A stretch of DNA of 64,000 nucleotides. Origin: Podarcis erhardii (lineage: Eukaryota). Shown here piece after piece: positions 14,300-58,427 of this stretch. The notes below the pieces were generated by a model, which made no database searches, was not told the origin of the DNA, and saw nothing but the letters and a program-made list of their open reading frames with translations. Made by a program: the position numbers and the translations under genes. The stretch is from the NCBI GenBank assembly GCA_964252035.1, contig OZ176200.1; one strand, written 5' to 3'. How positions within the stretch are numbered: position 1 is the first letter of the stretch; every line of letters starts with the position of its first letter.

Positions 14300-15060
14300 G
14301 CGGCTTCGTTGCTAGAGCCACCCACCTTGCGCGCGCATGGTCCCACGTTCAATTCCCGGCATCTCCCAGGAGGCCTTTTTTTTTTTTTTTTTTTAAAGCA
14401 CTCCTGCCTGAAATCCTGGATGGGTGGGCCAAGAGCCTGACTTGACTTAAGGCAGCATCTTAAGCCTTAAGCCCACCGTAGACCTGCCCTGTTTATAGAG
14501 CTCCCCCAGGTAGAAAGCGATATGTAAAATGTTGCCAAGACGACGAGTAAGCACCTTGGAGCCGTTTAATCTCTCCACTTAGGCTGTGCAGCTGCCTCTG
14601 CCCACGTCTACTTGCCCCCATGGAAGCCAACGGGGGGCTGACTGCCCTGCGAAGAACGACGCCTAGGGGCTGGGGCTGGGACACGCACGAGAGCGGTGCG
14701 TTTTCCTGTCAGGCAGCGAGCGGGGCAGCCCCGCGACGGCAGTGTGGAAGGACCCGTCCCTTTGGCGGCACGGAGAGTGGTGGGAGTGCCCAGAGCGTTG
14801 TCCCTGCAGCCCGTCCGACTCGCAGCTTCTCCTCGGCGGCGTCGCCATGTCCGTCAGCGAGATGTTCATCGCTTTGCAAGGGGTGCTCACGGCCGACCAG
14901 GATATCCGCGAGGTGAGAGAGGGTCGCGCCGGGGCGAGGACCACGGACGCTTCGCCAGAGCTCGGAAGGGGGATCCCTGCCTTCCCTTTCGCTGCTCCTC
15001 GGATCACGGGGATTAGAGCCCTGGTTTTCCTACCTTCCAAACCGAGGGAGCCAACCTTTT
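14300..15060 (+). promoter_or_regulatory. CpG-island promoter and 5' UTR of TSN
   Basis: CpG-dense region around the TSN start codon, which has a strong Kozak context (GCCATGT). Confidence 0.8.
14847..14912 (+). CDS. TSN: TSN coding exon 1
   Basis: MSVSEMFIALQGVLTADQDIRE, donor GAG|GTGAGA. Confidence 0.97.
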
Positions 15061-18000
15061 AACAACTGCATGCCTGAAACATGGGACCCATTTCTATCAC
15101 GTAAACCCAAAACCGCCCTATGTGCCTCTGTTGTGGCTCCTGTGACATTTACATAACGGCCCAGGAGAGGGAAATTTAGTTGTTGCTGCTTGTTACGCTA
15201 AGTGTGAGAGAAATTGCATAGGCTGAAATCTTCTGCCCTGCACCACCACCGTTAAAGATCTTATTCTCCTTTGCGCCTATTCTTTGTCAAAGCTGAACAA
15301 AGAAACAACAACAACAACCAGTGATGGTTGCAAGCACTGCCACCCATCTTGGGTCAAGGTGTGATCCTCTATGGGGTACTGACCCATCACAAGTAGCAAT
15401 ATGATGAACAGAATCATAGTAACAACCTAATTGCCTCATAGATAACCATTAGTTAGCTAAGTAGTGCAGACCCCGTTTTTCAAAAGCCAAGCTATGGACC
15501 CACTACTTTAAAAAAGTTTGATATCCCTATGGTAGTTTTTGTTACATGAATGGTGCCACAGATCTCCCGGGTGGATTACTGGGACTCCCTGGGGTCCATG
15601 GGCCCCCAATTAGGAACCAGAGGTCTAGAAATTTACTAGAGAGAAAGACGGGCAAAATTGAACAGCAGCTTTGTGCTAACACATTGCATGTTTTTCTGTA
15701 CCATCATATTCTGAGTATTTTATTGTTGTTTACAGGAGATCAGGAAAGTTGTTCAAACTCTGGAGCAAACAGCCCGGGAAATTCTTACAGTGCTACAAGG
15801 AGTCCACCAGGGGTCTGGATTTCAGGACAGTAGGTCATGCTTTGTTTGCCTATTGAGAAAAAAAAGTCACAAACATGTTTACATGCATAAAGGATGGTTA
15901 CAGAAGATGAGGATAAAAGATGCTACTCAGTAACGTAAAAGTGAAATGGTTATGTGTTTTGTGAAAAACATTTTTCTACTTCAGTTTCTTTGTGAATTGG
16001 AAATGCAGGAAAGTGAATCATGTACAATAGATTATAACACTAAATTTGACTGTTTCATTATTGGGCACTTAACTAGTCAACAAAGACTTATTCAGCTGTG
16101 AAATCTTAAAACAAGTCTGGTTTCTATATCCTATCAGACAGGGCAGGGCAGCTTGTGGGTTCTACTCTGCTTGAGCAGAGCCTGGTACAAAAGACATACT
16201 ATTAGAATGAAAGAATTCAGAACCTGGAAATTTTTTAAGGGCCAGAACTGAGCAAAGCACACAGTCTTTCCACACAATAATCCACTCCCTCCCCATTTCA
16301 GCAGTACAATTTAGTGGGTCATTTTGTTGTTGCAAGTGTTAAACACATCTGAGTAAGAAATCCTTGCTGATCTGCTTCAGATCACCCAGAGAATTACTAT
16401 TCAGTCACAGTTTACCTTCTGTTCACTCCAGGTGTGGGGAGCCTAAACAAGTAGAAGCAGGCTTCCTGCTTCAAACTGCCACCCTCCAATTCATGGGGAT
16501 TAGGGGTGGGTAGTGCTAGCACATTTGCTTCCACACCTCTACTCATCTGCCAGCTTACCCAGTTGCAGGAGTGAATCTCCCAGTAGAGCAGAGTGGCTGC
16601 AATAACATTCCCACAGCAGAGTCATTGCCATTTACTTTGAGGGTAGGAAGGGGTAGGTGGTGTGAAGGTCAGGGCTGTACAGACGAGCTAGCTAGCAGGA
16701 GCCCTGGATTGCCTCTTCCAGTGCATCCACAGAACCCTAACTCACCCACCCACCTAGTCTTTCCCTGTAAATGACAGTGACTGTTTCCAGGCACCTATTG
16801 CTGCAGCTGAACCACTCCTGTCATTATGAACTTATTTCAGTGGGACTAAACCATGACTAACTTAGGTTTCAGTCCTGTATCCACTTAGCTAGGAATAAGC
16901 CCCATTGAACTTAATGGAACTTAGTTTTGATGCATAGGATTGTGGTGTCCTATGGATGGATCCAGTGAATCAAACTTAATAGAAAATTAATAAATATATA
17001 AATGCTGTTGGGGTTGTTGTTCATTATTATAGTGCATACATTTGTGTTTTTATGTTGTAAACAACCCAGTGTTCTTCAGAGGGAGGTACAGATAGCAAAT
17101 AAATAAGAAACCTGTTTCTTTTAAGTATCACAGTATTGTCTTTGCTCATGGTTCTATGCCTAAAGGGTGTTTTCTTTAAAGAAACTCAAAAACAAATAAC
17201 TAGCCTTTGTTTTCGAGGTTAAGTGGTGTTTGTTTTTAATTTCAGTACCAAAGAAGTGTCAGAAGGCTCGTGAACACTTTGGTACTGTTAGGACACAGTT
17301 GGCCTCTCTGAAAAACAAGTTCCCTGCAGATCAATATTACAGGTTAGTAAATGTCCACTTTCCTCCTGCCTTTTGTGGTCTTTTTTATAATATTTTAATC
17401 TTTTTTCCATATAGAAAGTTACATTTGTTACTGAGCAATTTCAAACCAATCATTTTAATATGGGTGGCTATGATTTATTTCCACTGTTGGAGGCAGCATG
17501 CTTCAGCATACCAGTTACTAGGAATCACAAGTGGGGAGGATGCTATTGTACCACCACAAGGATAGGATTTAGGACTAGATGGGCATTTTGTCAGATCCAG
17601 CAGGAGTCTTCTGTTTAAAGTGCCAGGAATCACTTTCTCTTTCCCCCCCATGCAGATTTAATGAACATTGGAGATTTGTGTTACAACGTTTGGTGTTCTT
17701 AGCAGCATTTGTTGTCTACTTGGAGACAGAAACCTTAGTGACTCGGGAAGCTGCTACAGAAATACTTGGAAGTAAGGAAATGTTTTTCCACTTAAACGCA
17801 ATGACATTTGGCTTTAGCAAGGCTCCCTGTCTAAGAAATTCAGTAAAATGTTAACCTAAATTGGCATGTCAGAAAGCTTTTACATGTCACTTAGCCTTCC
17901 TTCTAAAACCTTTTGACATAGTTTGACAGTGAAATAAAGACTAGACCTCTGCTTCAGCTCTGCCAAGGTTCCCTTTTTAACTGAAAAAATTAGTAATTGT

Positions 18001-19593
18001 TAGTAAAAAAAGGAGTCCATATATGCACTGCTCGAGAGCTATGAGTTAGCAGAGTTGCAGGCTCCCTGGAAAGGTAGAAAGTCCACAGTGAAAGACAGGG
18101 GAATGTGGGAAGATTAGGTATACACATTAATTATATGAAGCTTCTATACATTCTTATTTACTTTGAAGAAGCCACACTTGTATTCAGTGAGGCTTACTAA
18201 ATGTTTAGGATTGCAGCTCTACTCCAGCAGTGTGGACTCTAAATGGCAGCTACTCATGAGGATCTTGGGCAGAGGTTTTCCCCATGAGCCCTGCTACCTG
18301 AAAATCCTTTTAACTAGAGATGCTAGGGACTGAACCTGGGGCCTTCTGCATGTAAATAATGTGGTCAGCCACTGAGCTTTGGTGCTTGGGATTTGGGGCT
18401 CAGATATGTAACCCTACAATCCTTTCTAGAGTCTGAGATTAACATCCGAGGTACTTCTCTGTGTGCACCCACCGAGAGATGTCGGAGTGTGGCAATGAGG
18501 GAATGGGCCTTTTCAGTGGTAACCTCAGTTATAGGATACTCTCCCCAGGGAAACTCACCTGACACTGGCTTTGTCCTCTTTCAGCCAATAGGTGAAGACA
18601 TTTTTATTCTTCCAGGCATTTGGACAGCAGCACTGATATTGGAACTTTTGGTGGCTACCAGGGTATACATCCTGTGTGAAGGGCGTGGATGCTTTGTGCT
18701 GTTTCAGATTACTTTTTCTTTGGATGAACACTTTTAGTATTTTATATTTGAATTGATCAGTGTAATTAACTAACCATTAACCTAAAAGGAAGGCCTAACT
18801 TGAATTGGCACTCCTTTCATTTTGCAGTCTTCTAGCCCAGATGATTTGTATTAGCAGAGTTGAATCCAAATCCATTCATTCTTTTTGCAGTTGAATCTGA
18901 AAGAGAGAAAGGCTTTCACCTGGACATTGAGGATTACCTCTCTGGGGTGTTGACTCTGGCTAGTGAGCTGGTAAGTAAAGAGTATTGAGAAGTTTTAGAA
19001 CTAATGCAGCATGACTTACCTAGTTGGACTGAAAGTAATATCCAGGGCCTTGTGTGGACAAAACTAGAGGTTACATACCATGGCTCTTTCTTTAATGAAG
19101 TTGCTAGTTGCTCTTTTTCTGCAAAGGGAGGCTTATGGTTGCATATTACTCTACTAATAGTAAAAGTTCACAAGATTGAGGCTTCTTCATCAAATATGCT
19201 CTAAAAGCCAGTATAATTTATCCTCTGGAAGGAAGACAAAGTGCTGAATACCCTGTTCAGATGTTAATACTGTTGTGGGACTCCAGTAAGGCCTACCTAG
19301 CCCGATTTGGTCTCTGCACCTCTGCTTATCTTGCACCATTCTGCTTTCTTCCATAGGCTAGGTTGGCAGTGAACAGTGTCACAGCTGGAGACTACGCCCG
19401 TCCCCTCCGCATCTCTGCTTTTATCAACGAGTTGGATTCCGGATTCCGCCTTCTCAACCTGAAGAATGACTCCCTGAGGAAGCGCTACGATGGCCTCAAG
19501 TACGATGTCAAGAAGATAGAGGAGGTGGTTTATGACCTGTCAATCAGAGGACTCAACAAGGACTCAATTGCTAATGCTGGTGGGGAGAAATAG
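14847..19593 (+). CDS. TSN: Translin, 229 aa; join(14847..14912,15736..15829,17246..17342,17656..17771,18891..18970,19357..19593)
   Basis: Spliced translation MSVSEMFIALQGVLTADQDIRE EIRKVVQTLEQTAREIL...RFNEHWRFVLQRLVFLAAFVVYLE...GFHLDIEDYLSGVL...NSVTAGDYARPL...LRKRYDGLKYDVKKIEEVVYDLSIRG; exons 66/94/97/116/80/237 nt = 690 nt; all introns GT-AG. Confidence 0.98.
15736..15829 (+). CDS. TSN: TSN coding exon 2
   Basis: TTTACAG|GAGATC...GACA|GTAGG; EIRKVVQTLEQTAREILTVLQGVHQGSGFQD. Confidence 0.97.
17246..17342 (+). CDS. TSN: TSN coding exon 3
   Basis: TTTCAG|TACCA...TACAG|GTTAGT; IPKKCQKAREHFGTVRTQLASLKNKFPADQYYR. Confidence 0.97.
17656..17771 (+). CDS. TSN: TSN coding exon 4
   Basis: ATGCAG|ATTT...GGAA|GTAAGG; FNEHWRFVLQRLVFLAAFVVYLETETLVTREAATEILG. 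Confidence 0.97.
18280..18382 (-). mobile_element. Squamate tRNA-derived SINE fragment (Squam2-like) in TSN intron 4
   Basis: gagatgctagggactgaacctggggccttctgcatg...ccactgagct is the reverse of a tRNA-like head; related copies near 27085-27355 and 28335-28490. Confidence 0.55.
18891..18970 (+). CDS. TSN: TSN coding exon 5
   Basis: TTTTTGCAG|TTGAA...GCTG|GTAAGT; IESEREKGFHLDIEDYLSGVLTLASEL. Confidence 0.97.
19357..19593 (+). CDS. TSN: TSN coding exon 6 (stop TAG)
   Basis: CCATAG|GCTAGG; ARLAVNSVTAGDYARPLRISAFINELDSGFRLLNLKNDSLRKRYDGLKYDVKKIEEVVYDLSIRGLNKDSIANAGGEK*. Confidence 0.98.
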   Translation, partial: ARLAVNSVTAGDYARPLRISAFINELDSGFRLLNLKNDSLRKRYDGLKYDVKKIEEVVYDLSIRGLNKDSIANAGGEK

Positions 19594-20952: not shown

Positions 20953-21826
20953 AGACACTGTTCTTTAATACTGTGTGTCTATGATTTTGTTATGTTTCTT
21001 ACAAGCTTGCACCCTGTAATTCACAATAACTTGTTAAGTGTACAGGTATCATATTTTCTTCATTTTAACGAAAACCCCTTCTTTCAAGACACTGCAATTC
21101 TACAGCGCCCATTTTGGGAGGAAGGCTATGATAAAGGGTTCACAACTGGTGCAGAAAATCTTGCTAAATGATATTCTTACAGGTTTTTTCCTGTCGGCTA
21201 TAGAATAGAAAAGTGCTGCCACATATTTTGTTCTCTAATATTCTACAGAGTTCTTTTTTATTATTATTCTCATGTGTCACTAGGATAGGAGTGATCTGGT
21301 ATGGAAAACAAAAAGAGAAGTTAATTAAAGTGCAAGGAAACATAATTATTAAAACATTTTATGTTAATCTACAATAATGTAACGGATTCCTTTTTAATTA
21401 AAATTTTGAAATACACTAGATTACATCATTTAAATAATCACAAACTAGAAGAGGTAATTGAGCCTTGTTAACAGAAGCGTATTTCAGAACGATTTCTGAT
21501 GTTAAGACATTCCTTGGATTTCTACAATGGGTTTTTAACCATTTACAAACAAATCCAGTGATCCGTAAAGGGAGAGAGTATTGCTTATCCACAGGATTAT
21601 ACAGGTATTCTGGAATGTTTGTGAGTGAACTCTGAATATATTTCGGCTTCCTTTTCCATTTACGTGTTACATGCATTCAGTGCAAAGTAAAACTCGGTAA
21701 ACTGGTTCCTACATGGGCATGAGGGTAGAAGTAGAAAACTGATAAGCTAACAAAAGATGGATGAATTAAATGTTTCCTGGGAGAGCAAGCTGAAATGAGG
21801 CTAATTATACTGTCTAAACATTCTCC

Positions 21827-23140: not shown

Positions 23141-23936
23141 TCATGACCTATTGTGCGATGCGCTTATCATGATGTTGGGCAAGGCGTTGCGCCGCTTCTT
23201 CCAGGAGCCCAGCTCCCGAGAGTACCTCCGTATCTGCCTGAACCAGTGGTGAGTTCGTGCCTTGTCTCCATCTCGGAACACAAAAGACTCCCGCCTGATC
23301 TCAAGGAGTTCAAACGTGTCGTCGCAGTCGGGATCCACAGAGACCACACAGTTGCTGAGTCTCAAGGGCTCCCTGAGCAAGCTGAACTTCCCATTGTTTT
23401 TGTCCCTAATCAGTACCAGTACTGCATCTTTCACAGGTCCTGGCTCTCCGGGTTCAAAGCTAGACTCAGAGGCGCGTCTGATGTTGACCATGAGGAGCAC
23501 TTGCATGTTCTGGAATTTTAAGGTCTTGCTGCCCTTTTTGACCCACTGTCCATCAGGAGGCTGGGCCAACTGCAAGGGCCCTTCCATCACAAAGCGGGTT
23601 TCTTCCCGCAGCCAGCCCACAGTCTTGATAGCGGTTTCCCTCATTTCAATGTTAATGACCTCCCTGTTCTTCTTGCTGTCCTGGCGGAAGGAACGCAAAG
23701 TCCACGAGTTTCCTTCCTGCTTGGTCTTCATGTTTATGTGCTCCAGGTGGGACTCAATGCGGCTTTTGGCCTCCCTCAGGCTGCTGTGATCTGGGTGGTA
23801 CTCAGTGGTGGCTTTGATGATGCGGCTCAGCAGAAGTGGGTACTTGGTGACTCTCTGCAGTGGAGCCATGAGGAAGGACCGCAGATTCATGCGGCGAAGA
23901 GCTGTGTTGTCGTTCTGGGAAACATTGAGGAAAATC
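23141..23936 (-). CDS. RhoGEF last exon: end of DH domain, PH domain, C-terminal tail
   Basis: Acceptor TTTTTACCTCCCTGCAG|GATTTTC; IFLNVSQNDNTALRRMNLRSFLMAPLQRVTKYPLLL...KKRRNALPNIMISASHNRS*. Confidence 0.95.
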
Positions 23937-26900
23937 CTGCAGGGAGGTAAAAAAAAAACGTATTTTGTAAACAGGTACAGGAAAACAGAAAAGCTTACAC
24001 CGAGGGTCTTGTTCTTACATACACATGAGGCCTTGTTATCTTTAATTGATTAACATTTACAAAGTAATTATGACTTAAGATCCCATATATATACTGCTTT
24101 CCTGCAAAACCATTTACTTGATTTGCTAGACTCAGGAACGTTTTTTATTTTTTCCCTGTTCTCAGGCTTTGTTTAATGCATCACTAAGGTAAGGTTCAAT
24201 AGACTTGCTGTTGATATCTTAGCTGTTAAATATTACTCAATTTATGCAAATGTAGACACAGGACAGTATCTAGCATATTAGTTGCAATAGTGCAGGGAAT
24301 GTTTTCACCCTCTCCTTGTCCTATGTGTCCTCTGTGCACCCCCTAAATCTGTTCTGGGGGTTCCCCCAGCCCTCTAAAACGGATTTGGGGAGGAGGTTGG
24401 AGGTGCAGGGAGCACTCAGACACTGTACTGGGAATGTCACAGGTGGATGGGCACGGCCTTTCTATCGTTCTGATAAAGCCCCAGTTGGTGATGTGCCTTT
24501 ATTGGTAAACTCCTCAGCTCTAGTTGATGCCATGTATCCTGGTGTAAGTGCCTGGTCATTGAAGAACCCCCTCTGCCCAAAGCATACTTGCTTCAAAGTA
24601 TGGGCTCATAGACAAACTTTTGCATATCTGAATTAATATGTACAGATGCAAATTCAGAATTTTAATATTACAGACAATAAACCCATCGGACACCCCAAAT
24701 ATGTTCAATTATATTGCACCCCACTCCAGATCTGTCCCCTCTTCAATTAATTTACTCTCGTTTTCCCAACAGATCCTTCTCCAAATCCATTTAATCCCCT
24801 TACAATTGCCCCCATTCATTATTATCTCTAGGTACGATCATTTCAAATTCATTTATTTCCACAAATTTATATCTTACTAACCCAGATCACACACCCCTCT
24901 GACACACACCCAGTTAATCTCTTGAATACATTACCTACCCAGAAACGCTCAATACATTTAGGAAAAGATACGGGGTCTGTGCCCCAAGGCATATACTCCC
25001 TACCAGGCCTGTGCAAGGGGGCGGGGACAGCTGGGTACACTTGCCCTGGGCCTTGGAGGGCTAGGGTGACTGGGGGGCTCCACCAGGGGCCTGCAGGACT
25101 TACGGTGTCATGTCAAGAACAAGACTTCCATGCTGGGCTTCATACAAGCTCTGAATGGTCCTGCTACCAACCCAAGATTAAGAGGTCTCCTCACCTGAGT
25201 AACTCCTTCTCTTTTTCCAGTGCATTGAGCATGTTCACTGAAGATGACTGCTGGAGGCAGTACGTCTGGAAGGCAGGCAGCATATTGACAAATTCCAGGA
25301 ATATCTCACCGATGCACACAGTCATGAGGTCATCATCGCCCTGCGGACACACAACACACAAGGCAATACATCACCCAGAGACGTGGAGGTACTAGAGGCC
25401 ATTAAAAGCCACCGGCCTAATATTCAGTTGTGGCGAATGTGCTGGAGTGGAGCTGGTGACATTGGTGTCTCCGCAGTTTACGGAGCTGAGGTGGGGCAGG
25501 GCAGCAGCAAAGGCAAGGCTGTGTGGACATACCAGCAGGAGGAACAGATTGGTGTCCACACAGCCCTGACCGCATCACCGCCCTGCCCCGTCCCAGCCCT
25601 ATCCAGGTAATATGCAGCCCAGACCTACCACCTTGACTGCAACTGCTAATATAATTGAAAGCTGATCTTGGACTACACGTTAGCAACACACCTCATGATA
25701 GCTGTTTCAACAGTGAGTTTCTTTTGGCCATGAACTACAGCTTGAATGCATTCTGAATAATTAAGCTCTTTCCGCACTGAAAACAAGGAAAAGTGCTACA
25801 CGTTTTTTCCTTGAACTGCAATCTATTCTCCAAACAGTGGCCCAAGCCCAGTCACTAGGAATCACAAGAGGGGGAAATGCTGTTATACTCAGCTTCTGTT
25901 TGTGAGCTTCCCATAGGCATCTCATTGGCCACTGTGAGGACAAGATGGTAGGTGAGATGGGCCTTTGGCCTGATCTAGTGGGATCTTCTTATGGTTTTCT
26001 ACTGACTCTGGTAGAACATTAAAAGTGTATGCAAACACAATGCAAAAGTGATTAATCTCAGCTTGACAACCATGTTGTTATTCCCTTCCATGTCTTTTAA
26101 TGATTTACTCTACTGATGTATATTTTTAGAATCTGTTACATTTTGATTCCTAATTAAAAAAAGATAAAAGTATTTCACAAAAGACTATTGCAAGACCATT
26201 CCCCTTTTTTGCCAGCATGAGGTGCTGTAGCACAGAGGTTCAATTATGACAGAGAGTACTACACTATTGCTGAAACAAAAACAAACATTCATAATTAAGG
26301 AAACATGCCACCCAACTTAAATGGTTTGCTGAAATCCATCAGCAGACAGCATCCTTGCAAGTTAAACTGGATTTCAGTTGAATTCCATGGATTAAATCTT
26401 CACTTTTGAGGTTTTGAAACTGGAGACTGTACCACTCTATTCCCCCCCAAAATTTCAACCCCATATATGTCAAAATAGAATGCTCAACATCTGAACCCTT
26501 TAAACTTACTGCATTAAAATCTGAAGAAGTGTGCATGCACACGAAAGCTCATACCTAGAACTAACTTAGTTGGTCTTTAAGGTGCTACTGGAAGGAATTT
26601 TTTTATTTTGTTTTGACTATGGCAGACCAACACGGCTACCCATCTGTAACTGCATTAAAATGTGCATGCACACAGATTCCCACAAAGTATTGCAATGCAA
26701 ATTTTGCATATATGATTTTGAGTTCTAAATTAATTTTTAAAATTGTGACTGGCAGAGCTGGAAATGGCTCACAGGATCTCTTTTACGCCTTTGGTCTTAT
26801 CCCCCAGCTCCTCTATTATCCTTGATTTCCCTCCTTGGCTCCCCAGCATCTTAAAAAGTTCAACTACATCTCTGACGCAGTGGATAGCATTATCACATTT

Positions 26901-29900
26901 CCCCATTTTGGATGATTATATCTTGGCTTTAAAAGACACAAACCTTTTGCCCGCTTGCACCACCAGCATGCAGTCCCTGGAAGGTCAGCTATGAGGAAAT
27001 ACAACACTTGAACTGAAAAAGGTTCCTTGACCCTCGTCCAAACTGGCTGGGAGTGACCCCCAAGGGTTTCACACAAGACCCTTTTCCAACCCTACCTGGG
27101 AGATGCCAGAGATCAAACCTTGAACCTTTGTATATAAAACATGACCTCTGACACCAAGAAGAATCCCTGTCCTGCCTACTTGTCCATATACCCAGTACTG
27201 TCTTCTCTGATGGCCCTCTAAGGCAGAGGGTCTTCACTGCACCTGCTACATGATCCTTCCCCTTCCCTCCCTTTTAAAAATGGCTAAGTCAGAGACTGAA
27301 CCTGGAACTTTCTGCATGAAAAGCATGTGTTCTCCTGCTGAGCTCTGGCCCTTCCCCAAGGCGATTATCCGGCCTTCAAAATAATACTCTCTCCTGCATT
27401 TGACTTGCAAAGTTCAGCAACAGGGCGCAGAGCCGTGTGCCGTACACAGGGTGCTAGTCTGTAATAATGAACCATCAAGAACTGCTGTTCCAGCAAATTA
27501 TAAGTAACCTTGAGTACGTTCAAGAAAGAGAGCCAGTTTGGAGCGTGGCTCAAATAACACTTAAAGGATTTAACTAGCCTTGCGTCTGTTCTTGGCCACC
27601 GGCAATTGTTGGCAGGCAAGGCTGCTTTTAATTGCTCTCCTGTGGGCAAGATGGGGTTCTTTGAATGCTGCTGTAAAAATTAATTTCATGGTAAAAGGGT
27701 GTTTTGTTTCTTTCAGAGCCCTTAATAAAGCACAGGGCATAATATAAATACACAGCGGCGTGTAAAAGCCATTCTCTTTGCTGAGGTGCTAGCGCAACCG
27801 TCTGCCTGCCGGCATTGTTTTCCTTCAGCCAATGGAAATGCGGCAATATTTGGAACTGATGGTAGGCTTCGCTGCGCAGCAAATTGAAAGTGCTAAAGGG
27901 GCAATTCCACATGTCATAAAGCTAGCCCCAGACTGGTCTGTTCAGGAGCACATGGGGCCTTCCCCAGCCTGGTGCCTGCCAGATGTTTTGGACTACAACT
28001 CCCACCCCTTACCATTGGACATGCTGGCTGGGGCTGATGGGAGCTGTAGTCTAACAACACCTAGAGGGCACCAGGCTGGGGGAGGTTGGCATAGGGATTC
28101 ATGCATTGCAGGGGGCTTTCTTAGGTGATTCTATGATTCTACAAGGCACAAAGGATTTTTGAGTTGCTTATTCACCAAGTGGTCTTGAATTGACGTATCT
28201 TGTTGACAATCACAAAGAAACACAGGCGACCTATGGTAGACTGGGGGCATCCAATCAGAGCTAGAGGCAGATGTTTACTCACACAATTGAAATGACAAAA
28301 AATAAATAAAAAGTTGGTACCCTTTGGAACAAGAGCACAGGGAAGCTGCCTTATACCAAGCCAGATCAACTAGCTCAATACTGTCTTCTTTGACTGGTAG
28401 CATCTCTCCCAGCCCTACCTGGAGATGGTGGGGATGGAACCTGGGACCTCCTACACGCAATGCAGGTGCTCTTACACTCAGCAATGGCCCCTTCCCTCTT
28501 TCAGCAGCTAAAATGAGTCAGACAGAGGCATACCCATTCTCAATTCCCTTACCTGCTCATTAGGCATTGTGCCTTTCTAATGAGTGGCACAACCTTTGAG
28601 TGCCATAGTAACAAAGCTGCAGTGGGAAAAGTAGCTCATTATAACTGCACAGGGAAACGGAGAAGAAATCTGAGACCACACACTACCTGCTCAAAGGCCT
28701 GCTCAATCTCTTCCTGAAGGTACTCCAGGAAGTTTTCGTTGAGGTCAATGAGCTCCTGTATGTTGCCGAAAACCACCAGCAGCTGGTCCTGTGTTAGCAG
28801 GCCAGCAGCTTGCATGGGGAGGTAGAACTCTTCCTTGATGATGCGCAGGTCCTCCCCGTAGCTGGTTTCAGTGTTGACAAACTCCAGCACCGACTCCTTC
28901 CGCTCCGTCCGGCACTTCAGGCACTTCTCGCAGAGGACGGCCCGCCTCTTGTTCTGGTTCTGGACATCCGTCTCCAGCGGGAAGTGTCTCCCCCCACAGT
29001 CGGTGCAAGGCTGGTGGGCCTCCCACGCCTGCAGAGATGCCAGCGTCTCCGACGCCTTGCTCCTCCACTTCCTACTCAGCACTTGGCTGATGCCGCTGTC
29101 CGCCCGCTCCATCTCAGCCGGCCTCATCCTTGGCACCCCTCCACTGCTGGCATCGGCACTGTCCCTCTCGTCACTCCCGCCCACAATGCCGCTGTCGGCG
29201 CTGAGACTGCTGACGTTGCTCCAGCGGTGTTTGGAACGAAAGGAGCCGCCCAGAATGCCGTGGTTCTCATCAACGTTGCTGCTGTAGTTGAGGTTGGCTT
29301 TCGTCAGCACTGGGCCTGAGCGGGGAGGAAAATAAAATAAATCTATTTGTAGAACCTTCCCATTGTTTTGTTCCTCAGCCCTGTTCATCCAACAGTAAAA
29401 AACTTGTCCTGTTTTGTTTTGTTTTTCCCCTTGTGACCAGGAAGGATTCTGCAAAGTACCTGAATACAGAGACAGGGAGAATCTAGTTCTTAATGATATG
29501 TTGCTACATTCTGGCATTTTCATACATACATAAAGATTTTCTTTTTCTTCATGCTAAGAAAAGCTTGACCTGATCGCTAAGCATGCTCTTAAAGGTACAG
29601 TAGCAGGTCATTAAAAAAAAAAAATAGACAGAAACCCTCCTTGTATTGTACTGGTTAAATTGTCCATCTAGCCTAATGTTACCTCAAAGCCTTGGTCAAG
29701 GTTTCCTTAGCCTTGCCTGCTGAGATCCTTTAAATAGACCTAGACAACTTTTGACCCACCAATATATCCCACTGGCTACATTGCTTGCTGGGTGCTTCTA
29801 TATATTTGCAGCCCCCCAAAAGTAGAGGTTTATCAAACTCCTGGTGGGCCACAATGCACAACTGTGTTTAGTCTCGTGGGCCACAAGCTAGCAGGTCTAC

Positions 29901-32900
29901 TTGACAGTATGCAAAGAACATATTCCGCTTCTGAGCTACATTTCTCTCTTTAATTCAACAGCTAGGGAAGGACGCTCTCATTTGGAATTTGGCTCAGGTG
30001 TGTTGGAAGAAACAAGCCTGTCCTAATGAACTATGCAAACAACAAGTGGAAGCCACATATTGATGGCTCCATCTGCTCAGTATACTTGCAGAACAATTGT
30101 TCCAGGTTCTACTCACCTTTTGCTATATCATGCATGAAGTCAAAGAAAGCACTAGATTGAAGCTTAGCTCATGACACTGCCTTACCTTTGCATACCCCCT
30201 TTCCTGCATTTGCCAGGAGCCAGTTTGGTCCTGTATGGGCCCAGTCCAGGCTATTGGCTGTTGCTATGAATTGTACAGACAGAGAGTACACTGGAGGAGG
30301 AGCTGCTACTGTATTCCCTCTCCTCTGGAGGGACCCTGGAATAAGAGGCTACAGCCGGCTGCAAACATAATCCACGGCTGTTGAGTGTGAGATGTTTGGA
30401 GGCTATCTCTCTGAATGATGACTGCTAACCTAATGTCAAAACACACCCGGAACTATGAGTGACATGGACACACCCTGCAAATCACACACAAAGCAAGAGG
30501 CAAGGGGAGCCTACTGGAGTCTCTCTCTTGCCGGCGCTTCTGGGCATGCTGCCGTGCTGCTGCAGCGATCTTCAGCTCCAGTTGTTTCCTCTTCACAGCA
30601 TCTGTTGGCATCGGATCACTGAAATGAGGCCGCAGCCGACACTCCCGTTGAGCTTTGGTGCAGTCCGAAGTTTCGTAGGAGATGTCAGAACTTGATCGGC
30701 GGCAGTTGGGGCTGGAGCTCTGGAAGGAAAGCAAGGGGTGGTTGTGGGGAGAGGTTTCTACTAAACAATATATGAGATACTTAAATAAGGTAAAGGTAAA
30801 GGGACCCCTGACCATTAGGTCCAGTCGTGACCGACTCTGGGGTTGCGGTGCTCGTCTTGCTTTATTGGCCGAGGGAGCTGGTGTACAGCTTCCCGGTCAT
30901 GTGGCCAGCATGACTAAGCCGCTTCTGGTGAATCAGAGCAGTGCATGGAAACACCGTTTACCTTCCCACCGGAGCGGTACCTATTTATCTACTTGCACTT
31001 TGACGTGCTTTCAAACTGCTAGGTTGGCAGGAGCAGGGAGCAAGCAACAAGAGCTCACCCCGTCGTGGGGATTCGAACTGCCAACCTTCTGAACGGCAAG
31101 TCCTAGGCTCTGTGGTTTAACCCCCAGTGCCACCTGCATCCCTTGAAGATACTTAAATATACATGGCCAAATCTGACACCCAGCACCCACTGTCAACTTT
31201 TCCCTTTTCTTGCGAGGAATCCTATTCGGAATAAGGGCATTTCCCTTTAAAAAAAGGAAACGTTGACAGCTATGAGAATAATGTGTGGACAGTCCAGCGT
31301 CAATCCAACATGATCGCACTATTACTGCATGAATGACACACTATGGAATACACCTCCAAAATGCACCAGTCTGGAGGGGCCCTTAGTCACATGTAACTTT
31401 AGCTGGATTTGCACGGTAGTGTTGATGTGCCTTAGGTATCTTCATTCAATAGCTTGTTCCTCGCAGCCACCCAGAAGCAGGAAGGGTGAGATGGGGTGCG
31501 GGAAAACAGGAAAGAGAGAGAGGGGAGAGAGGTAGAAGAAGGGAGGGAGGAGAGCCAGAAGAGTATTAGTGACAGGGGTGCAAAATAGCTGAGAGCTGTC
31601 ATAGCAAGTAAAGTTACAGCTCCCTGACCCAACACTTCTGAGACCCCTTTCTGCTTCAGGCCACGCAACTCACGGTGGGTTGTTGCGAGTCCTCCACAAA
31701 AGTGAGGTCATCCTTCTTAAGTTCACAGAATCCTTTGGAGGGGGGCTCAGGGGTAGCTTCGCCACTGCAGCTGTGAAAAAAGGGACACCACCCCAATTAA
31801 TGTCCTGCACAAACAGCAGTCCAGAGCCAACTCCAAGGGTTGGGAGGAAAATGCATCTTTAAAGCTACAGTGTATTATTCTACAGGTTTTCTACCTTGTG
31901 AAGTCAAAAGCACCACATATCGTCTTTCTCTTACATATACCATTCCATAAATGTACTTCTAATGATGCAGTGGATAATAGGGTTGTGTGTGTGGTTTTTT
32001 TAATGAAACATGTTTGTAAATTTAAAGGGTTGCCCCCCCTTAATATTTCTGTATAAAAGCAGCATCTAAAGTGCATGAAATCTTTAAGCTTCTCGTCCCT
32101 GTTAGTTGTTTTATTTGCACTAAGATAGGAGACAACTTTCTGTTCTGTCATCAAAAAGAAAGTGCTCCCCTAAATTATCAGATACCATGAATAATTTCTC
32201 ATTCATAAATGATGAGGAAACTGTATATCCAAGCCCCAAGGGACAGAAGAGAGAGGACAAAACCTAGTCACACCCACATATACAGGATTAGCGGTGGCAG
32301 AAACAGAGATAACATTTAGCATTTACGTAGCTCACTTGAAGTGTTCACTACACTCGGCACACAATTATGAATGGGTGAAGGGGTTTAAGATTTCCAGGTG
32401 TCACTCACACACAAAAATTAATGCTTTGCTTATTTGATATATTGCATTTGGGGATCTTGTGAATCATCAGGAGACTGCAGTATCCTTCCTTCTGCCTGTG
32501 TTAAAGAACTGTATACCATTCTAGATAGTTGCCCTCTAGGCAACCCTTCATACAAAAACACAAAATACATCTTTTAAAATAAATATTCCCTGTGTGGCCC
32601 ATCACACATTTTCTCACAAATATACAGTGAATCTTTGGTTACTATGCTGCTTCATATAGCATTTTTAAAATAAAAAAATTACATCATCTAACAAAACAAC
32701 AACAGAGTAACTATACCAACTCTGGATAGTGACGTTGGATAATATCTATATACATATTATTCCTGTGGCTTGGCTCACTTTCATGAATCGCTTGGTATTA
32801 TCTGATATGAAGACAGCTCAGGGGTGTGTGACTTGTTCACTCCTGCTTTCAGCTTGTGGCACATTGTTCTGAATTGATCTGTAAGGAGCTGGTGCATGGA

Positions 32901-35900
32901 TAATCCTGCCTTGTGGGGAAGAAAAGGGAGGTTGGAGTCCATGCCAGTTCAGTGTTCTCCAACTCTATGGCTCTGCCTAACTGGGATGACAGCGCTTTCT
33001 GCCCCACAATATTATACACACTGTGGACGAATTCCCAGCTTAGAATGCAGCTAGCTTGTTCTATTTCTCAACTGAAGCTAGTTTGGAAGGAAAGGCATCA
33101 AAATGCAGTAAAAGTATCTCCCCGCTTACGCATGTTCGACTCTCGCGTGGCCATGTATATGCTCGGTGCAGGGAAACAATTAAATAAATAGATTTAAACT
33201 TCAAAAAGGCAAGAAAATGGCAAAAGCAGTCCTAAAAGAGCACAAGAACTACAAAAATGGTGTGAAAAGAGCAGAAAAAATGGCTAGCAATCCCAGGAAC
33301 CTTTGCAACTGCAATCTCATGAGCCTTTGAGTTGAGTTTGAGAAAGGAGGTTTGGAGGGAGCGATTGTGGTGGAGTTTGGCATGTTTTGGGTGGCACTTG
33401 GTAGGGAAGGTGTTTACAAGATTTAGATGTGGCTAATATTCTGTGTGCCCTGCTTCCCAAACCAGCTGTGGAAGTACACTGGATGCAGAATAAACAGAAC
33501 TGTGAACACCACCTCAGTTTTCCAGAGAAAGAGAGAGTACGGTAGGTATTTCAGGCGATATGCAAAATGGCAAATTATATTAAAACTACTGGGAATTTTC
33601 CTTTGTAGGAAGTTATTTCTCTTTATATTCAAGAAATCATATACACACAGTTCCATATTTATTGGATACTGGAGTGCTCTTATCTGTACAATAGTTCTCA
33701 TGATATATATCCTCTCAACTGACTCTTGGCCGACTGTTTTTGCATCTATTCTATCTCTTTCTCCCAGGTGAGAGTAGTTCTTCCATATGGTATTAGAGCA
33801 AGGAATTAATGTAATGGAAGATTTCTGGATGGGGGGGAAATGTACATAATGGTACTGCAACTATTTGTGGCTGAGGTGGTTCAATCAGAGATGTGGCTAA
33901 TTTGAATGAAGCTAGGATGATCAGTATATGAGGTGGGTGTTGTTTTTGTTTCTGCTAGACATGGTAACTGGCTTCAGTTTTTGGAGAAGGGTAGTCCATT
34001 TGCCTGCTTCACTGAAAAAAAATTGTTCCCAAGGCTCCACCCTATTTAGTACCTCACTGCTGCAGATCCCAAATGGTCCAACATCATCTTTGATTTTATT
34101 ATGGAACCATCTTTATCCACCTCTTAAATAACTGAGCAATACTTCAATCTTGAGGCACCCTGTCATCTAGCATTCCTTCATCTACTCTACAAGCTGGGCC
34201 TTTCTGTTATGGCTGAATTTTTCCTCTTCTCACTTCCCCCATATCATCCTTGACATTGGCTGCTGTTTTGACCTTGAAAGAAAACAATATTTTGCCCAGC
34301 AACTTCATGCACTTTAATATGCTCAAATCCAAATATTTTTATTTTTTATTTTTTTTAACCTTGGGACTTTTATTTCCTTAACTGCTTTCTCTGTCATCGT
34401 AAAATTTTTGCCTGTCTTTAATTCCTTATATACCGGATGATCTGATTTCTTGCCCATTCACTGACTTGACTATTAATAATGCCCTAGGTTTTCATCTTTC
34501 TCTGTCTTCAGAAGTCAAATTCCTCAGAAAGCCTGGTAAACACAATTCACAATCAAAAGGTAAAACAGGTAATAAATCAGAATCACCTTTCAATCATGCT
34601 TTCAACCATTTCTTTTTTGCTCAAGTAAAAAAAATGCTCTACAATTCATGACAGGTTTTAGATTATTCCATGAAGATAAAACACTACAAATTAGAGGCTC
34701 AGAATTAAAACATTAAGCTGCTTATAAATGTGTTGAGTAAATTACATTTGGAAGAAAGTTCAGAAATAAAGGGCAGATGTGTTGCATGTAATTCAAACAC
34801 ACGCACAAAATTCCAGCAGAATCTTAAGAAGCCAATGACAAGAATAACCCAGGAAGTCTTCCACTTCACATGAATGAATGCTAACTTAATCTGAAATGAT
34901 AAAATTGTCATGGATGAAAAGGGTATCAATTGCCAGTAGTTATGAAGGCTATATTACCTCCAGTATGCCTCTCACTACCAGTTGCTAGACAGCATAAGTG
35001 CTATTGCAAAAATGTCCTGCTTGTGGGCTTCTGGGTGGCCACTGTGGTAACAGGATGCTGGACCAAATGGACCTTTGGTCTGATCCAGCAGTGCTCTTCT
35101 TATGATTTTATGTGCTGAAAGGATGCTGCTCCATGTAAACAATTGACTGTATGCAGCAGCTCACCTTACGGACTGGCCTCACACCAGATCTCCCCATGTT
35201 ATTCATATTACTGAGGTTTTCTTACAACAAGCACTGGGTCAAATCATGCGGCATGGGGGAAATCCACACGGCAAGACAAGGCACATGAATACCTGGCCCC
35301 ATGGAGCAACTGCCACAAGGACCCAATTTCAAGCAGCCTCAGCGCCACATGTTGCTGAAGTGAACCTAAGGCTTGCAACCCTGTCATTTCACTGCCAAAT
35401 CCTGAGAATATGTTGCCTTTCAAATCTAGTGACACCCCTGCCACTGAGCCAGAAACTCCCATCGTCAAAACAAGATCCTCCATGAGATTGCTAAAGCTCT
35501 GGAAGAAAATGACAGCTGGGTTTTGAGCAAATAATGGCTCTCAGTTTTACAATTTCAAAGGGAAACTGTTTGGTCTCATAAGCTTTTGACTCAAAGTCAT
35601 GAGAAGCTTGGCAACTGGTTGAAATGACCATTGTGCTTTTCATAGCAATGAATTAATTTCAGAAAGCTCTGAATGTAAGCAAACTGAGCTTGATAAAGTC
35701 CATCTATTACTATGACCCTACCTGGCAAAAGGGATGTTGTGAACAAAAGAAAATAACACTGTGCGATGGATCTCAGTCCCATACTTGCAGAACCCATGGC
35801 TTACAAGAGCAGACACTGGCTCACCTGAGCAGGAGGAGGCGTTTTTCTGCACTTGGGACAATGGAATCTCTATGTAGATAAGACAAGAGTGCCTCAATTA

Positions 35901-38900
35901 TTTTAGACCAAAGGGCTGCATTTTCTCAGTCTCCAAGCTCCTGTGTGGTTTTTAATGTTTGAATACCCCTTTTATTGACTTTTGCTGCTCTGATGGGTTT
36001 CACCAGGCTGTATATTATGTATTTTCTGTTGAGTTTATAGTTTTCTTGTTCTCATTCTTGTTTGTTACTTTAATTTTCAAATTCTGTATTGCCTCATGTT
36101 TGCACATCGATAAACCAGATTTTCTGGTTTATTGTGAACTGCTTCTTTCCCCTCCTAGCACCAGAAAGATAAACTAGGAAGCCTTGGCTTCCTAGTATAC
36201 CTGAATCAGGGTTCATGGTTTGTGGCTTCCTAGTATACCTGAATCAGGGTTCATGGTTTGTGGCTTCCTAGTATACCTGAATCAGGGTTCATGGTTTGTG
36301 GCTTCCTAGTATACCTGAATCAGGGTTCATGGTTTGTTGATCCGTAACAAACAAACAAACAAACAAACCATGATTACAAGCAAACTTTAAGCCATTTAAG
36401 CCATAGTTGTTGGCCTATGACATGTGGACTTGTTAGGGAGCAACAAGTCATGATTCCTAGCTTAGATGTAATGGGAAGCCAAGACTTCCTGGTTTGTTCA
36501 TCCTGCCTGGGGGGAATGAGGTGGGAGTGATTGAGCATGTTGCTCATTTACAATAAACCACAATCTGCCAGAAAATCTGACTTATCATGATATGTGAATG
36601 TAGATGTGATAGAGCAGAGCATAAATCTTTATATATAAACCAATAAGGGTTCCATTCAGTCACCCCGTATGACCCTAGAATAGTGAATCCTAAGCTTATG
36701 GTTCCAACAAGGGAATTCAGTCTCTGCCTTGAACTCATCATGGAAACTATCCCTCATAGGATTTATGTTGTAGGTTGCCCCAAATACACACTGCAGGAAA
36801 TCTACCAATATATTAGGTCTCCATAACCATTGATAGCTTAGAAAAGGCAGCATTTTTTGAATTATTTGCCCAAGTCACCTGAAAGTCAGTTTTCAAGTGG
36901 TCACAGACTTTAATATTATGTTTTGTGTCACCTCCATTCACATGATTGACATTTCCTCCAACCTTCTGCCCAGAGTCAATAATTAACCCTCCCTGTGAAG
37001 ATCTAGATGTGTGTCAATGAACAAGGAGGACCAGTCATTTCAGTGCCTCAAGGAACAGAGCAAACACCCCCCACGGGGCAGAGGGAGCCCCCACCTCTCC
37101 ACAATCCCCAGACTACCCTTCTAGATTGTTAGGCAAACTCCTTCCTGACATCAGATATAGCAGTTAGTTAAAAACCCCAGCTTCATCAGTTCTCCCAAAG
37201 TGGCATATGGGAAAATGTCTGCACAAATTAACACAGCCCCAACACTGTCTCTTTCCCTACAGCTGCCTGATACCTCAAAGAAAGGAACTCCCCACAGGTC
37301 AAAAGGGGAAAAGCTATTAATGGCGTAAGTGTCTGTGCAAATTATTACACCTCTGCAGCATACTGATTCAGCAAGGAAATTCTATAAATTACTTAATGCA
37401 GCTAAATTTGAAAGTGCATTTATAAGTACCCAAAAACTGAAATTGCTCTCAAGAACTCTAACAGAGTTGGTTACCTCTTCTTAATGAGGTCCAGTGCAGA
37501 GCCTATAAATTCATCCTTCATTTTCTGCAGTTTAGCTCCATAGCTGGATATATCTGTTGCTTCTAATAGCAATGGGCAGCAAGAAGACTGGTTTTCAGGC
37601 ACCACTGGCTGTCCAGCATGGTGGAGGACTTCGCTTAGTTGTCTTGCATTCAATCCCTGAGTCTCCCCTTCAGCAAAAGTTTTCCCTCCCTCCTCCCTAA
37701 GGGCTGCAGCAGACTGTAGAGGTGGTCTTGGAATTGGACTCGAACAAATGGGGACCGGGATTCTATCTGAAGTTGGCACTTCATAGTGCTTGTCCCTAGC
37801 CATAGGCATGTTCATCAGGCAGAAGCTCCTGTCCCATGTAGATGAATTATCTTGATAGCCAACAAGGCCAGAAGTGCTCTGGGTATTTTCATGAAACACA
37901 TCATCATAATAATCTATCGTTGCAACCGTTTCTTTGGCAAGAATTTGCTGGGCACCTGAACAAGGGTTCTGATTTCTTTTTTCTTCCAACTTTTGGGTTC
38001 CTTCCTTCACATCTTTTGTCACATCACCGCTGCCACCGAGAAAACATGTCTCCTTGATTCTCATCCGCTTGAACTCTTCAAAAGTTGGAATGTAGAGTCT
38101 CTCTTTGAAGTCCCCTTTTTTGCTCAGCTCCAAAATCCTTTTGGTGTCTCCTTCCCCCTCATATCCCTTTAAGGATCCAGTTGTTTGGGACTTGACCATG
38201 TCCTGGCCATCACTGGCACAATGGAGAGTCAAGTTGGGTGAGCTGTTCTGTCTCCTGATCTGCAACCTTCTCCGAGCTTCTTGCTTGATGTCTTCTGGGT
38301 TTGTTAGTCGGCGAGAAAAGCAAGGCCGATGACTCCCCAGAGCTGTCCATGGCCCGTGAGTGAGGGTGGCATGCTGCACAAATATGGTGCAACAGTTCAC
38401 CGAACAACCGTTCTTATATTGCTGGCACGCCCGGCATTCAGAGCATTCCCTTGGAACCAGGTCATTCAAGGAAACCTGAGGTCTGAGAGGCTTGCAGATC
38501 TCTGCAGCTTTACTACTGTGAATTCGAAGTTTTTCCTTTAGGGTTTTTTTGGCATCCCCGTCGACGGAGGAGAAGAGCCACGGAGGCACTTTGGCACAAG
38601 GAGGAAGGGTGACGTCTCGCGCTGCAGGTGGAATTCTGTCCAACGTGAGAGGGAAGTGTCGGCAGCATTCAGGTGAGCTGGGGGATGAAGTACCTTCCGC
38701 AGAACACTTTGACCAATGAGCTGTGCCTTTGTAACGGACAACAAATTCTTTGTCTACATTTCCGTAGCGGGGATGGCAATGCGGCTCAGCCCCCGTGGCC
38801 CAGTGTAGATTCTCCACACTTCGATACAGATGTGCCCCTGCAGTGCTGTCTGCTTTGCTCACAGGATTAAAGTCCCCAGTAAAAATGCGAGCGTCCAAGT

Positions 38901-39027
38901 TCTTCAGTGGATGCATGCTGCTAACTGAGAAATCCTTTAAGCCATGTTGTGCATACAGCTGATTATTCTGGCAGCTCAAAATTACCCGACAGTGTTCCTG
39001 CCTCTCATCAACGCTGATGTATGTCAT
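23141..39027 (-). CDS. Uncharacterised Dbl-family Rho guanine nucleotide exchange factor (DH-PH), about 1141 aa; complement(join(23141..23936,25195..25340,28687..29315,30515..30719,31674..31770,37475..39027))
   Basis: Six exons (1553/97/205/629/146/796 nt = 3426 nt) join in frame with GT-AG introns, phases 2,0,1,0,2; DH motifs ERKESVLEFVNTETSYGEDLRII, VFGNIQELIDLN, FQTYC, LRSFLMAPLQRVTKYPLLLSRI, HPDHSSLREA; PH-like tail ending in HHWFRQIRRY; start codon position is the least certain part. Confidence 0.9.
25195..25340 (-). CDS. RhoGEF exon, mid DH domain
   Basis: GTGTCCGCAG|GGCGAT...CTCAG|GTGAG; GDDDLMTVCIGEIFLEFVNMLPAFQTYCLQQSSSVNMLNALEKEKELL. Confidence 0.93.
25905..26000 (+). mobile_element. 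CR1 3'-tail fragment
   Basis: tcccataggcatctcattggccactgtgag...gatgggcctttggcctgatctag...cttcttatg. Confidence 0.55.
27958..28085. mobile_element. Palindromic MITE with long inverted arms
   Basis: ccccagcctggtgcc..ccagatgttttggactacaactccc / gggagctgtagtctaacaacacctagagggcaccaggctggg. Confidence 0.75.
28335..28490 (-). mobile_element. Squam2-like SINE (tRNA-derived head plus CR1-like tail)
   Basis: Reverse strand reads gggccattgctgagtgtaagagcacctgcattgcgtgtaggaggtcccaggttc...atctccaggtagggctgggagag...cagtattgagctag...gtataaggcagcttcc. Confidence 0.65.
28687..29315 (-). CDS. RhoGEF exon: Ser-rich linker, Cys4 motif and start of DH domain
   Basis: TTTTCCTCCCCGCTCAG|GCCCAG...GAGCAG|GTAGTG; PCTDCGG...LCEKCLKCRTERKESVLEFVNTETSYGEDLRII. 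Confidence 0.95.
30515..30719 (-). CDS. RhoGEF exon (basic, helical segment)
   Basis: CTTTCCTTCCAG|AGCTCC...TCCA|GTAGG; SSSPNCRRSSSDISYETS...DAVKRKQLELKIAAAARQHAQKRRQERDS. Confidence 0.85.
30788..31142 (-). mobile_element. Full-length Sauria SINE with 13-bp target-site duplication
   Basis: tRNA-like head, internal AATAAA, (ACCTTT)n tail; TSD AGATACTTAAATA at 30775-30787 and 31147-31159. Confidence 0.92.
31674..31770 (-). CDS. RhoGEF 97-nt exon
   Basis: CCCTTTTTTCACAG|CTGCAG...CCCACC|GTGAGT; (S)CSGEATPEPPSKGFCELKKDDLTFVEDSQQPT; phases 2 to 0 bridge the flanking exons. Confidence 0.8.
35010..35115 (+). mobile_element. CR1 3'-tail fragment
   Basis: ggccactgtggtaacaggatgctggaccaaatggacctttggtctgatccagcagtgctcttcttatg. 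Confidence 0.65.
35293..35498 (-). CDS. Candidate alternative RhoGEF exon with its own ATG (35483), in frame with the 31770 exon
   Basis: Acceptor TGTCATTTTCTTCCAG|AGC, donor GGCCAG|GTATTC; open frame across all 206 nt; ends in phase 2 like the large exon. Confidence 0.35.
36186..36337. repeat. Perfect minisatellite, 4 x 38 bp
   Basis: ggcttcctagtatacctgaatcagggttcatggtttgt repeated exactly four times. Confidence 0.98.
37475..39027 (-). CDS. RhoGEF large first coding exon (517 codons); exon probably begins at an acceptor at 39219
   Basis: 1.66-kb stop-free frame; GCTATGA start (purine at -3); donor AAGAAGAG|GTAACC in phase 2; upstream acceptor CTTTCCTTCTTTGCATCATCAG|GTGTT with an in-frame TGA before the ATG. 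Confidence 0.8.
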
Positions 39028-58372: not shown

Positions 58373-58427
58373 CTTTCTGCTTCTTATCATGCTGCAGCTG
58401 TGACTGTAAGAACTTAAAAGCTTGCTG

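Follow-up and report, generated by a model that had tools for sequence, protein, structure and literature searches.

The window analysed here is a stretch of 64,000 nucleotides of the lizard Podarcis erhardii (contig OZ176200.1 of assembly GCA_964252035.1). On its minus strand, from position 39027 to 23141, six coding exons join without an internal stop into a protein of 1141 residues, a guanine nucleotide exchange factor (GEF) of the Dbl family with a Dbl homology (DH) domain and a pleckstrin homology (PH) fold. An earlier note, written from the letters of the window, had proposed an intact DH-PH RhoGEF of about this length from six exons beside the gene TSN, and the exon joins, the match to the Pfam family PF00621, the structure model and the TSN open reading frames all agree with it. 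The joined coding sequence comprises 3426 nt with a single, terminal stop codon, all introns are of the GT..AG type and the phases are compatible. Exons were found using orthologous proteins as tblastn guides, among them P0001 of Elgaria, and their borders were then read directly.

Exon 1 (37475..39027; all exons on the minus strand) encodes residues 1-517 and two bases of codon 518, in a disordered N-terminal region. Exon 2 (31674..31770) has only 97 nt; it was located by tblastn with the Elgaria protein, and its AG/GT borders and frame were checked. Exon 3 (30515..30719) carries an RSSSD / LRPHFSDP block and, after it, a basic stretch resembling a helix, and exon 4 (28687..29315) the motifs SNVSSLSADSG and ERADSG, a motif of four cysteines (Cys4) and the first third of the DH domain. 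The middle of this domain is encoded by exon 5 (25195..25340), whose junction to exon 6 is found in RNA reads, while exon 6 (23141..23936) contributes the last third, the PH fold, a conserved tail and the stop codon. In length and in its first residues (MTYISVDERQ), our model agrees with P0145, the RefSeq protein of Podarcis muralis LOC114603832. Both proteins are 98.4% identical and the 18 differing residues all lie within positions 1-684; at the DNA level the exons are 96-100% identical, exon 3 reaching 100%, with a synonymous divergence (dS) of 0.04. Orthologous matches to exon 1 reach 80% identity in Elgaria and 50% in birds.

The DH domain spans residues 762-945 (23732..28887, minus strand, exons 4-6) and matches PF00621 with E=1.1e-37, as computed on the P. 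muralis protein P0145, which is identical to that of P. erhardii in this part. Exon 4 (E=2.6e-11) and exon 6 (E=1.9e-13) also match PF00621 separately, as two halves of one domain. In DH structures, the glutamate of conserved region 1 (CR1) and positions of the CR3 helix contact the GTPase. Both the CR1 glutamate (T-E in NTETSYG) and the CR3 helix P-x-QR-x-x-KYPLLL are invariant from flies to the lizard. In our alignment A1, which contains 28 sequences from 6 invertebrate and 22 vertebrate taxa, the corresponding invariant columns are T78/E79, P213, Q215, R216, K219, Y220, P221 and L222-224. The PH fold (residues ~990-1119; 23210..23599, minus strand) was seen in the structure model only, since none of the Pfam PH profiles reached threshold on the protein. 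Similarly, Bashaw et al. found the PH domain of the fly protein GEF64C, discussed below, hardly detectable by profile (2001, PMC2199320). The AlphaFold2 model of residues 690-1141, built on the 28-sequence alignment, has a mean predicted local distance difference test (pLDDT) score of 78. It shows the DH domain as a bundle of helices, then a linker helix and a beta sandwich of seven strands plus a C-terminal helix, i.e. a PH fold with pLDDT 84-92 over most strands; the final 16 residues are disordered. Using Foldseek, 380-420 columns were aligned to solved DH/PH tandems with E values down to 3e-14 and 17-21% identity; p115-RhoGEF, PDZ-RhoGEF and NET1 came first, followed by intersectin, LARG and Dbs. 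The complete DH domain and the PH-like domain of the earlier note were thus both recovered, and its long N-terminal region, Cys4 motif and basic tail were all located in the protein. The gene therefore encodes a DH-PH exchange module with intact catalytic signatures; nucleotide exchange itself would be attributed to it by analogy with the fly orthologue, the only member for which it has been assayed. In all 28 aligned sequences the protein ends within 10-15 residues of the tail, which places the DH-PH module at the extreme C-terminus.

Pfam returned nothing at threshold on the N-terminus, the Cys4 segment or the PH segment. The DH domain is the sole Pfam domain recognised, in line with the claim that no SH3, PDZ, RGS or C1 module is present. 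The N-terminal 700 residues hold no domain and are disordered; they carry short conserved motifs. In exon 1 these include RLYIPTFEEFKRMR and the SSYGAKLQKMKDEFIGSALDLIKK block, which are common to lamprey and a hemichordate. Across lamprey, hemichordate, amphioxus and abalone, RLYIPTFEEFKRMR, an SSYGAKLQKMK...IKKSC block, RSSSD, LRPHFSDP, SNVSSLSADSG and ERADSG are kept, the exon 3 block being partly conserved in amphioxus and abalone. Residues 648-695 in exon 4 (~29085-29230, minus strand) contain two conserved D-S-G motifs, SADSGIVGGS and ERADSGIS; in the alignment, the insect counterparts read DSGVGS, the form of a beta-TrCP phosphodegron. Besides, dozens of short Logan contigs (2-5 kb) from many species carry only the first exon of 505-517 residues, and this exon, single and long, may be recovered frequently by capture or transcriptome sequencing.

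The protein belongs to a family that is found far beyond squamates. A query with exon 1 alone matched squamates, birds, a frog and many teleosts; several of the fish entries carry the name arhgef49 or "Rho guanine nucleotide exchange factor 49", and a zebrafish-derived name among the matches is si:dkey-91i10.2. With the DH-PH region of the frog orthologue, 120 proteins were listed at E<1e-174, from frogs, salamanders, caecilians, squamates, turtles, crocodilians, birds, lungfish, coelacanth, bichir, gar, bowfin and teleosts. Orthologues are also present in sharks, skate and lamprey. In this region, the frog protein is 72-79% identical to the jawed-vertebrate orthologues listed, among them those of birds and fish, the lamprey protein being more diverged. 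An exhaustive search of cluster representatives moreover revealed invertebrate members with scores of 336-429 bits in amphioxus, acorn worm, abalone, horseshoe crab, amphipod, Anopheles, hoverfly and Musca. Their alignments extend from about 100 residues before the DH domain through the final residues, and the Musca member is named "rho guanine nucleotide exchange factor at 64C". Outside the family, the highest scores, 112 bits at most, belong to amoebozoan Dbl proteins and an ARHGEF11-like protein of a frog. In a maximum likelihood tree of the DH-PH region with 35 rows, the family was separated with 98/98 support from outgroups that were the best-scoring non-family Dbl proteins, a limited sampling that does not include all 71 human Dbl members. 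Branching inside the family mirrors the species tree, as would be expected for a single-copy orthologue. A Protein Atlas feature search with exon 6 retrieved generic RhoGEF/PH clusters only, with scores below 0.9.

From these results the gene is very probably the lizard orthologue of Drosophila RhoGEF64C and of fish arhgef49 (zebrafish si:dkey-91i10.2), a single-copy bilaterian Dbl-family GEF that was lost in placentals. The arhgef49 records of fishes and the 'uncharacterized protein LOC...' records of sauropsids and amphibians are direct orthologues of about 1100-1250 aa with shared N-terminal motifs, from which the lizard protein differs in nothing of substance. Drosophila RhoGEF64C (PMC2199320) falls into the same 98/98 clade and shares with the lizard protein the DH-PH module at the extreme C-terminus, the invariant CxDC...CxxC motif before the DH domain and the invariant W-basic-RRNAL-x-N-x-M tail, as well as a long low-complexity N-terminus and a PH domain too diverged for profile detection. 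However, insect GEF64C proteins are much longer (2000-2600 residues versus 1141 in the lizard), their N-termini cannot be aligned with that of the lizard beyond a few short motifs, and identity in the DH-PH region amounts to 43-44%.

Drosophila RhoGEF64C is the sole member with a tested function. The fly protein acts as an exchange factor for Rho and, less strongly, for Rac, with no such activity towards Cdc42; the stress fibres that it induces are sensitive to C3, and dominant-negative RhoA suppresses its axon-attraction phenotype (PMC2199320). Another study described the fly protein as apically localised and as helping to restrict Rho1 activity during spiracle invagination (PMC9707551). Because fly GEF64C prefers Rho over Rac and is inert on Cdc42, a RhoA-directed GEF is the likeliest mechanism. 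By analogy, RhoA is somewhat favoured as the main substrate of the vertebrate protein. The DH-PH tandem would then release GDP mainly from RhoA and perhaps more weakly from Rac, like the fly protein, and RhoA activation would make actomyosin contract locally in polarised cells, for instance in epithelia or growth cones; where the GEF localises and how it is regulated would depend on its N-terminal motifs, tail and cysteine motif.

A RhoGEF64C/arhgef49 orthologue that acts mainly on Rac or another Rho-family GTPase instead of RhoA is the alternative that holds up best, although we consider it rather unlikely, and we judge a Rac preference or a broader GTPase range of the vertebrate protein to be about equally improbable. 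In vitro, the preference of the fly protein for Rho is modest, as it exchanges on both Rho and Rac and binds all three GTPases (PMC2199320), and of the proteins with solved structures, the intersectins, specific for Cdc42, and TIAM1, specific for Rac, match best in sequence. However, both the fly genetics and the stress-fibre assays were RhoA-dependent (PMC2199320), and the RhoA-specific tandems p115, PDZ-RhoGEF and NET1 lead the structural neighbours of our model, albeit by small margins.

Judged by sequence, the gene has no human counterpart, as had been supposed. Sequence searches of the PDB gave no close relative. Of the human DH domains with a solved structure, that of ITSN2 scored highest, with 90 bits at ~20% identity, followed by TIAM1, NET1, ARHGEF11 and ARHGEF3 at ~71-72 bits. 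No placental protein was present among the family matches, and neither a reciprocal best match to a human Dbl protein nor a 1:1 orthologue among human ARHGEF or PLEKHG genes was found. The human DH-PH GEFs with solved structures (ITSN1/2, NET1/ARHGEF3, ARHGEF1/11/12 and TIAM1) have the tandem fold and the catalytic signature in common with the lizard protein, but they share 17-21% identity with it and at most 90 bits, lack the Cys4 motif and the tail, and possess other accessory domains. These human GEFs are paralogues and not orthologues of the lizard protein. Automatic names like 'intersectin-2-like', 'rho guanine nucleotide exchange factor 17-like' and 'myosin-M heavy chain-like' suggest that the gene could be a divergent orthologue or co-orthologue of ITSN2, ARHGEF17, NET1 or another human Dbl gene, and ITSN2 is indeed the best PDB match. 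Nevertheless, we regard this as very improbable: the ITSN2 match covers the DH domain only, compared with 340-430 bits over the whole DH-PH region for invertebrate 64C proteins, the Pfam scan found no SH3, EH or WD40 domains in the lizard GEF, and the published phylogeny sets GEF64C outside the 71 human members (PMC5499878).

This phylogeny stems from Fort and Blangy, who surveyed Dbl-like GEFs in 175 genomes (2017, Genome Biol Evol, PMC5499878). They reported GEF64C in fishes, coelacanth, other vertebrates and marsupials, described its absence in placentals as a specific loss and found the platypus to lack it. In the same study, RhoGEF64C was conserved in both Protostomia and Deuterostomia, and GEF64C counted as the 72nd vertebrate Dbl member (PMC5499878). 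The gene family, the fly function and the placental loss are thus already known, and the gene is annotated in hundreds of genomes. Therefore, the suggestion of an undescribed signalling component did not hold, given the characterised fly orthologue, the name arhgef49 in fish annotations and the placental loss published in 2017. The related idea of a vertebrate-only RhoGEF without any characterised relative has in its favour that most vertebrate records are named only 'uncharacterized protein LOC...' and that the gene names hardly occur in the literature, where we found a single paper with arhgef49 and none with si:dkey-91i10.2. It was ruled out, and its chance is next to nil, by the invertebrate orthologues, one of them named RhoGEF at 64C, which align over the whole DH-PH region, the Cys4 motif and the tail, by the 98/98 clade and by the 2017 report of vertebrate GEF64C (PMC5499878). 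Of the assumption that the function is unstudied, the part concerning vertebrates stands, as we found no study on vertebrate GEF64C/arhgef49 function in the literature; it does not apply to the fly, where RhoGEF64C has been characterised (PMC2199320). The CxDC...CxxC motif and the tail, conserved from fly to lizard, are possibly new details.

The lizard gene is under purifying selection. Compared with P. muralis, the ratio of nonsynonymous to synonymous substitution rates (dN/dS) was 0.17 for the whole coding sequence and 0.23 for the N-terminal 684 codons, and the DH-PH part showed 0 nonsynonymous and 7 synonymous changes. The intron between exons 5 and 6 is only 93% identical between the two species and contains indels. 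Transcription was supported by RNA reads of a related species. Three reads with distinct starts from one single-cell run span the exon 5/exon 6 junction (joint 23935->25194) and skip 1258 bases ending in GT..AG on the minus strand, which is the predicted intron. Therefore, the gene is transcribed and spliced as predicted. Exons 5 and 6 were covered at about 1x depth in two single-cell runs, and two bulk RNA-seq runs (X23, X24) had no reads on the exons of the GEF; transcription is at a low level or confined to few cells. A decaying or non-functional copy, to which low RNA coverage, the placental loss and the fast evolution in marsupials might point, can be dismissed in view of 1141 open codons, splice sites that are all canonical, the dN/dS of 0.17, a DH-PH region without any amino-acid change to P. 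muralis and the existence of spliced reads. RNA reads of the related species also pile up in intron 4 (26340-26740 and 27940-28140) at a depth of up to ~260. We rejected these piles as exons, as they consist of partial matches that run into unlike sequence, with many variants and strand-switch joints, which is the behaviour of a dispersed repeat.

Some points speak against a RhoA-directed GEF64C orthologue as the interpretation of this locus. The GTPase preference is borrowed, by analogy, from a fly protein with only 43-44% identity in the DH-PH region. Besides, the evidence for expression is thin, with a few single-cell reads of a related species and none in the two bulk runs. Furthermore, the apparent lack of a human orthologue is drawn from score gaps, from the families with solved structures and from the published phylogeny.

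The sole mammals among the family matches were the marsupials Dromiciops (LOC122745940), Sarcophilus (LOC105749828) and Monodelphis (LOC103104764), and no monotreme or placental protein was present among the annotated proteins matched. This taxonomic pattern agrees with the earlier survey, in which non-placental vertebrates including marsupials possess the gene and placentals do not (PMC5499878). The marsupial stem branch measures 0.6 changes per site versus ~0.04 for the sauropsid stem, and in the DH-PH region marsupials are 62-65% and the shark 71% identical to the lizard. Like the lizard GEF, the marsupial orthologues (P0200, P0352, P0353) have retained all invariant columns, those of the Cys4 motif, CR1/CR3 and the tail among them; they are about 100 residues shorter, with some N-terminal parts missing. 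From the fast marsupial branch and the absence in placentals it follows that the mammalian lineage combined fast change with loss. The earlier view of an ancient vertebrate gene lost or relocated in mammals thus captured its age and the mammal-side loss, but the gene is bilaterian in age and marsupials have retained a fast-evolving copy.

Two short elements flanking the DH-PH module deserve special attention. The CxDC...CxxC motif (28921..29007, minus strand) comprises C722, C725, C747 and C750 and lies directly before the first DH helix. Across the 28 aligned sequences, from flies to the lizard, neither the four cysteines nor D724 varies. No Pfam family matches this segment and the AlphaFold2 model has low confidence over it; it is not a C1 domain. 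The motif is a putative zinc-binding knuckle. The C-terminal tail, G-x-W-(K/R)(K/R)-RRNAL-(P/A)-N-(I/L)-M, covers residues 1120-1134 (23165..23209, minus strand), with the basic KKRRNAL at 23180-23200 on the same strand. Its G, W, RRNAL, N and M are likewise invariant from fly to lizard (28/28), and it is disordered in the model. The invariance of these two elements and of the N-terminal motifs indicates that they matter. That the tail, the cysteine motif or both, invariant for ~600 million years, constitute an undescribed regulatory device of this GEF family is a speculative proposal which we think unlikely. By its sequence, the tail matches the R-R-x-A-hydrophobic pseudosubstrate form of PKI and might serve as a docking site for, or an inhibitor of, PKA or a different basophilic AGC kinase. 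Another possibility is that it extends the PH helix so as to bind a partner, analogous to the G-alpha-q site of p63RhoGEF. The CxDC...CxxC motif, for its part, could act as a zinc knuckle at the DH start and control access to this domain.

The neighbouring gene TSN (translin; 14847..19593, plus strand), recognised by an open reading frame with MSVSEMF..., lies tail to tail with the GEF gene at a distance of 3.5 kb. The TSN reading frames in the window match the Pfam-Translin genes that adjoin the orthologue in Amia and sparrow. The same tail-to-tail arrangement was found in bowfin (4 kb apart) and house sparrow (8.7 kb apart) and also in P. muralis and Anolis sagrei. The synteny check near TSN that had been proposed thus gave linkage in bowfin, sparrow, Anolis and Podarcis, and since it is shared by bowfin and sauropsids, the linkage is at least as old as the bony fishes. 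In Monodelphis and the bamboo shark no translin exon was found within the 10 kb downstream flank, which is short, so that this is no sign of lost synteny. About 1.7 kb downstream of the GEF stop codon lies an AU-rich element of 110 nt (21337..21446, minus strand) with 87.5% identity over 112 nt to a sparrow segment (L004:22714-22823) located ~800 nt past the sparrow stop. It had no Rfam match and no stable fold, and it is probably a conserved regulatory element of the 3' untranslated region. Upstream of the GEF gene, two adjacent open reading frames of 240 and 109 aa were seen at 58422-59537 (plus strand); judged by eye, they are possibly a fragment of a transposable-element protein, of a long interspersed nuclear element (LINE) or similar.

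Taken as a whole, GEF64C is the one Dbl-family GEF that vertebrates inherited and humans are missing, and its recognition from raw sequence in the earlier note is a rediscovery, not a discovery. The interest that remains lies in its vertebrate function, in the invariant cysteine motif and tail, and in its retention by marsupials as opposed to its loss in placentals.

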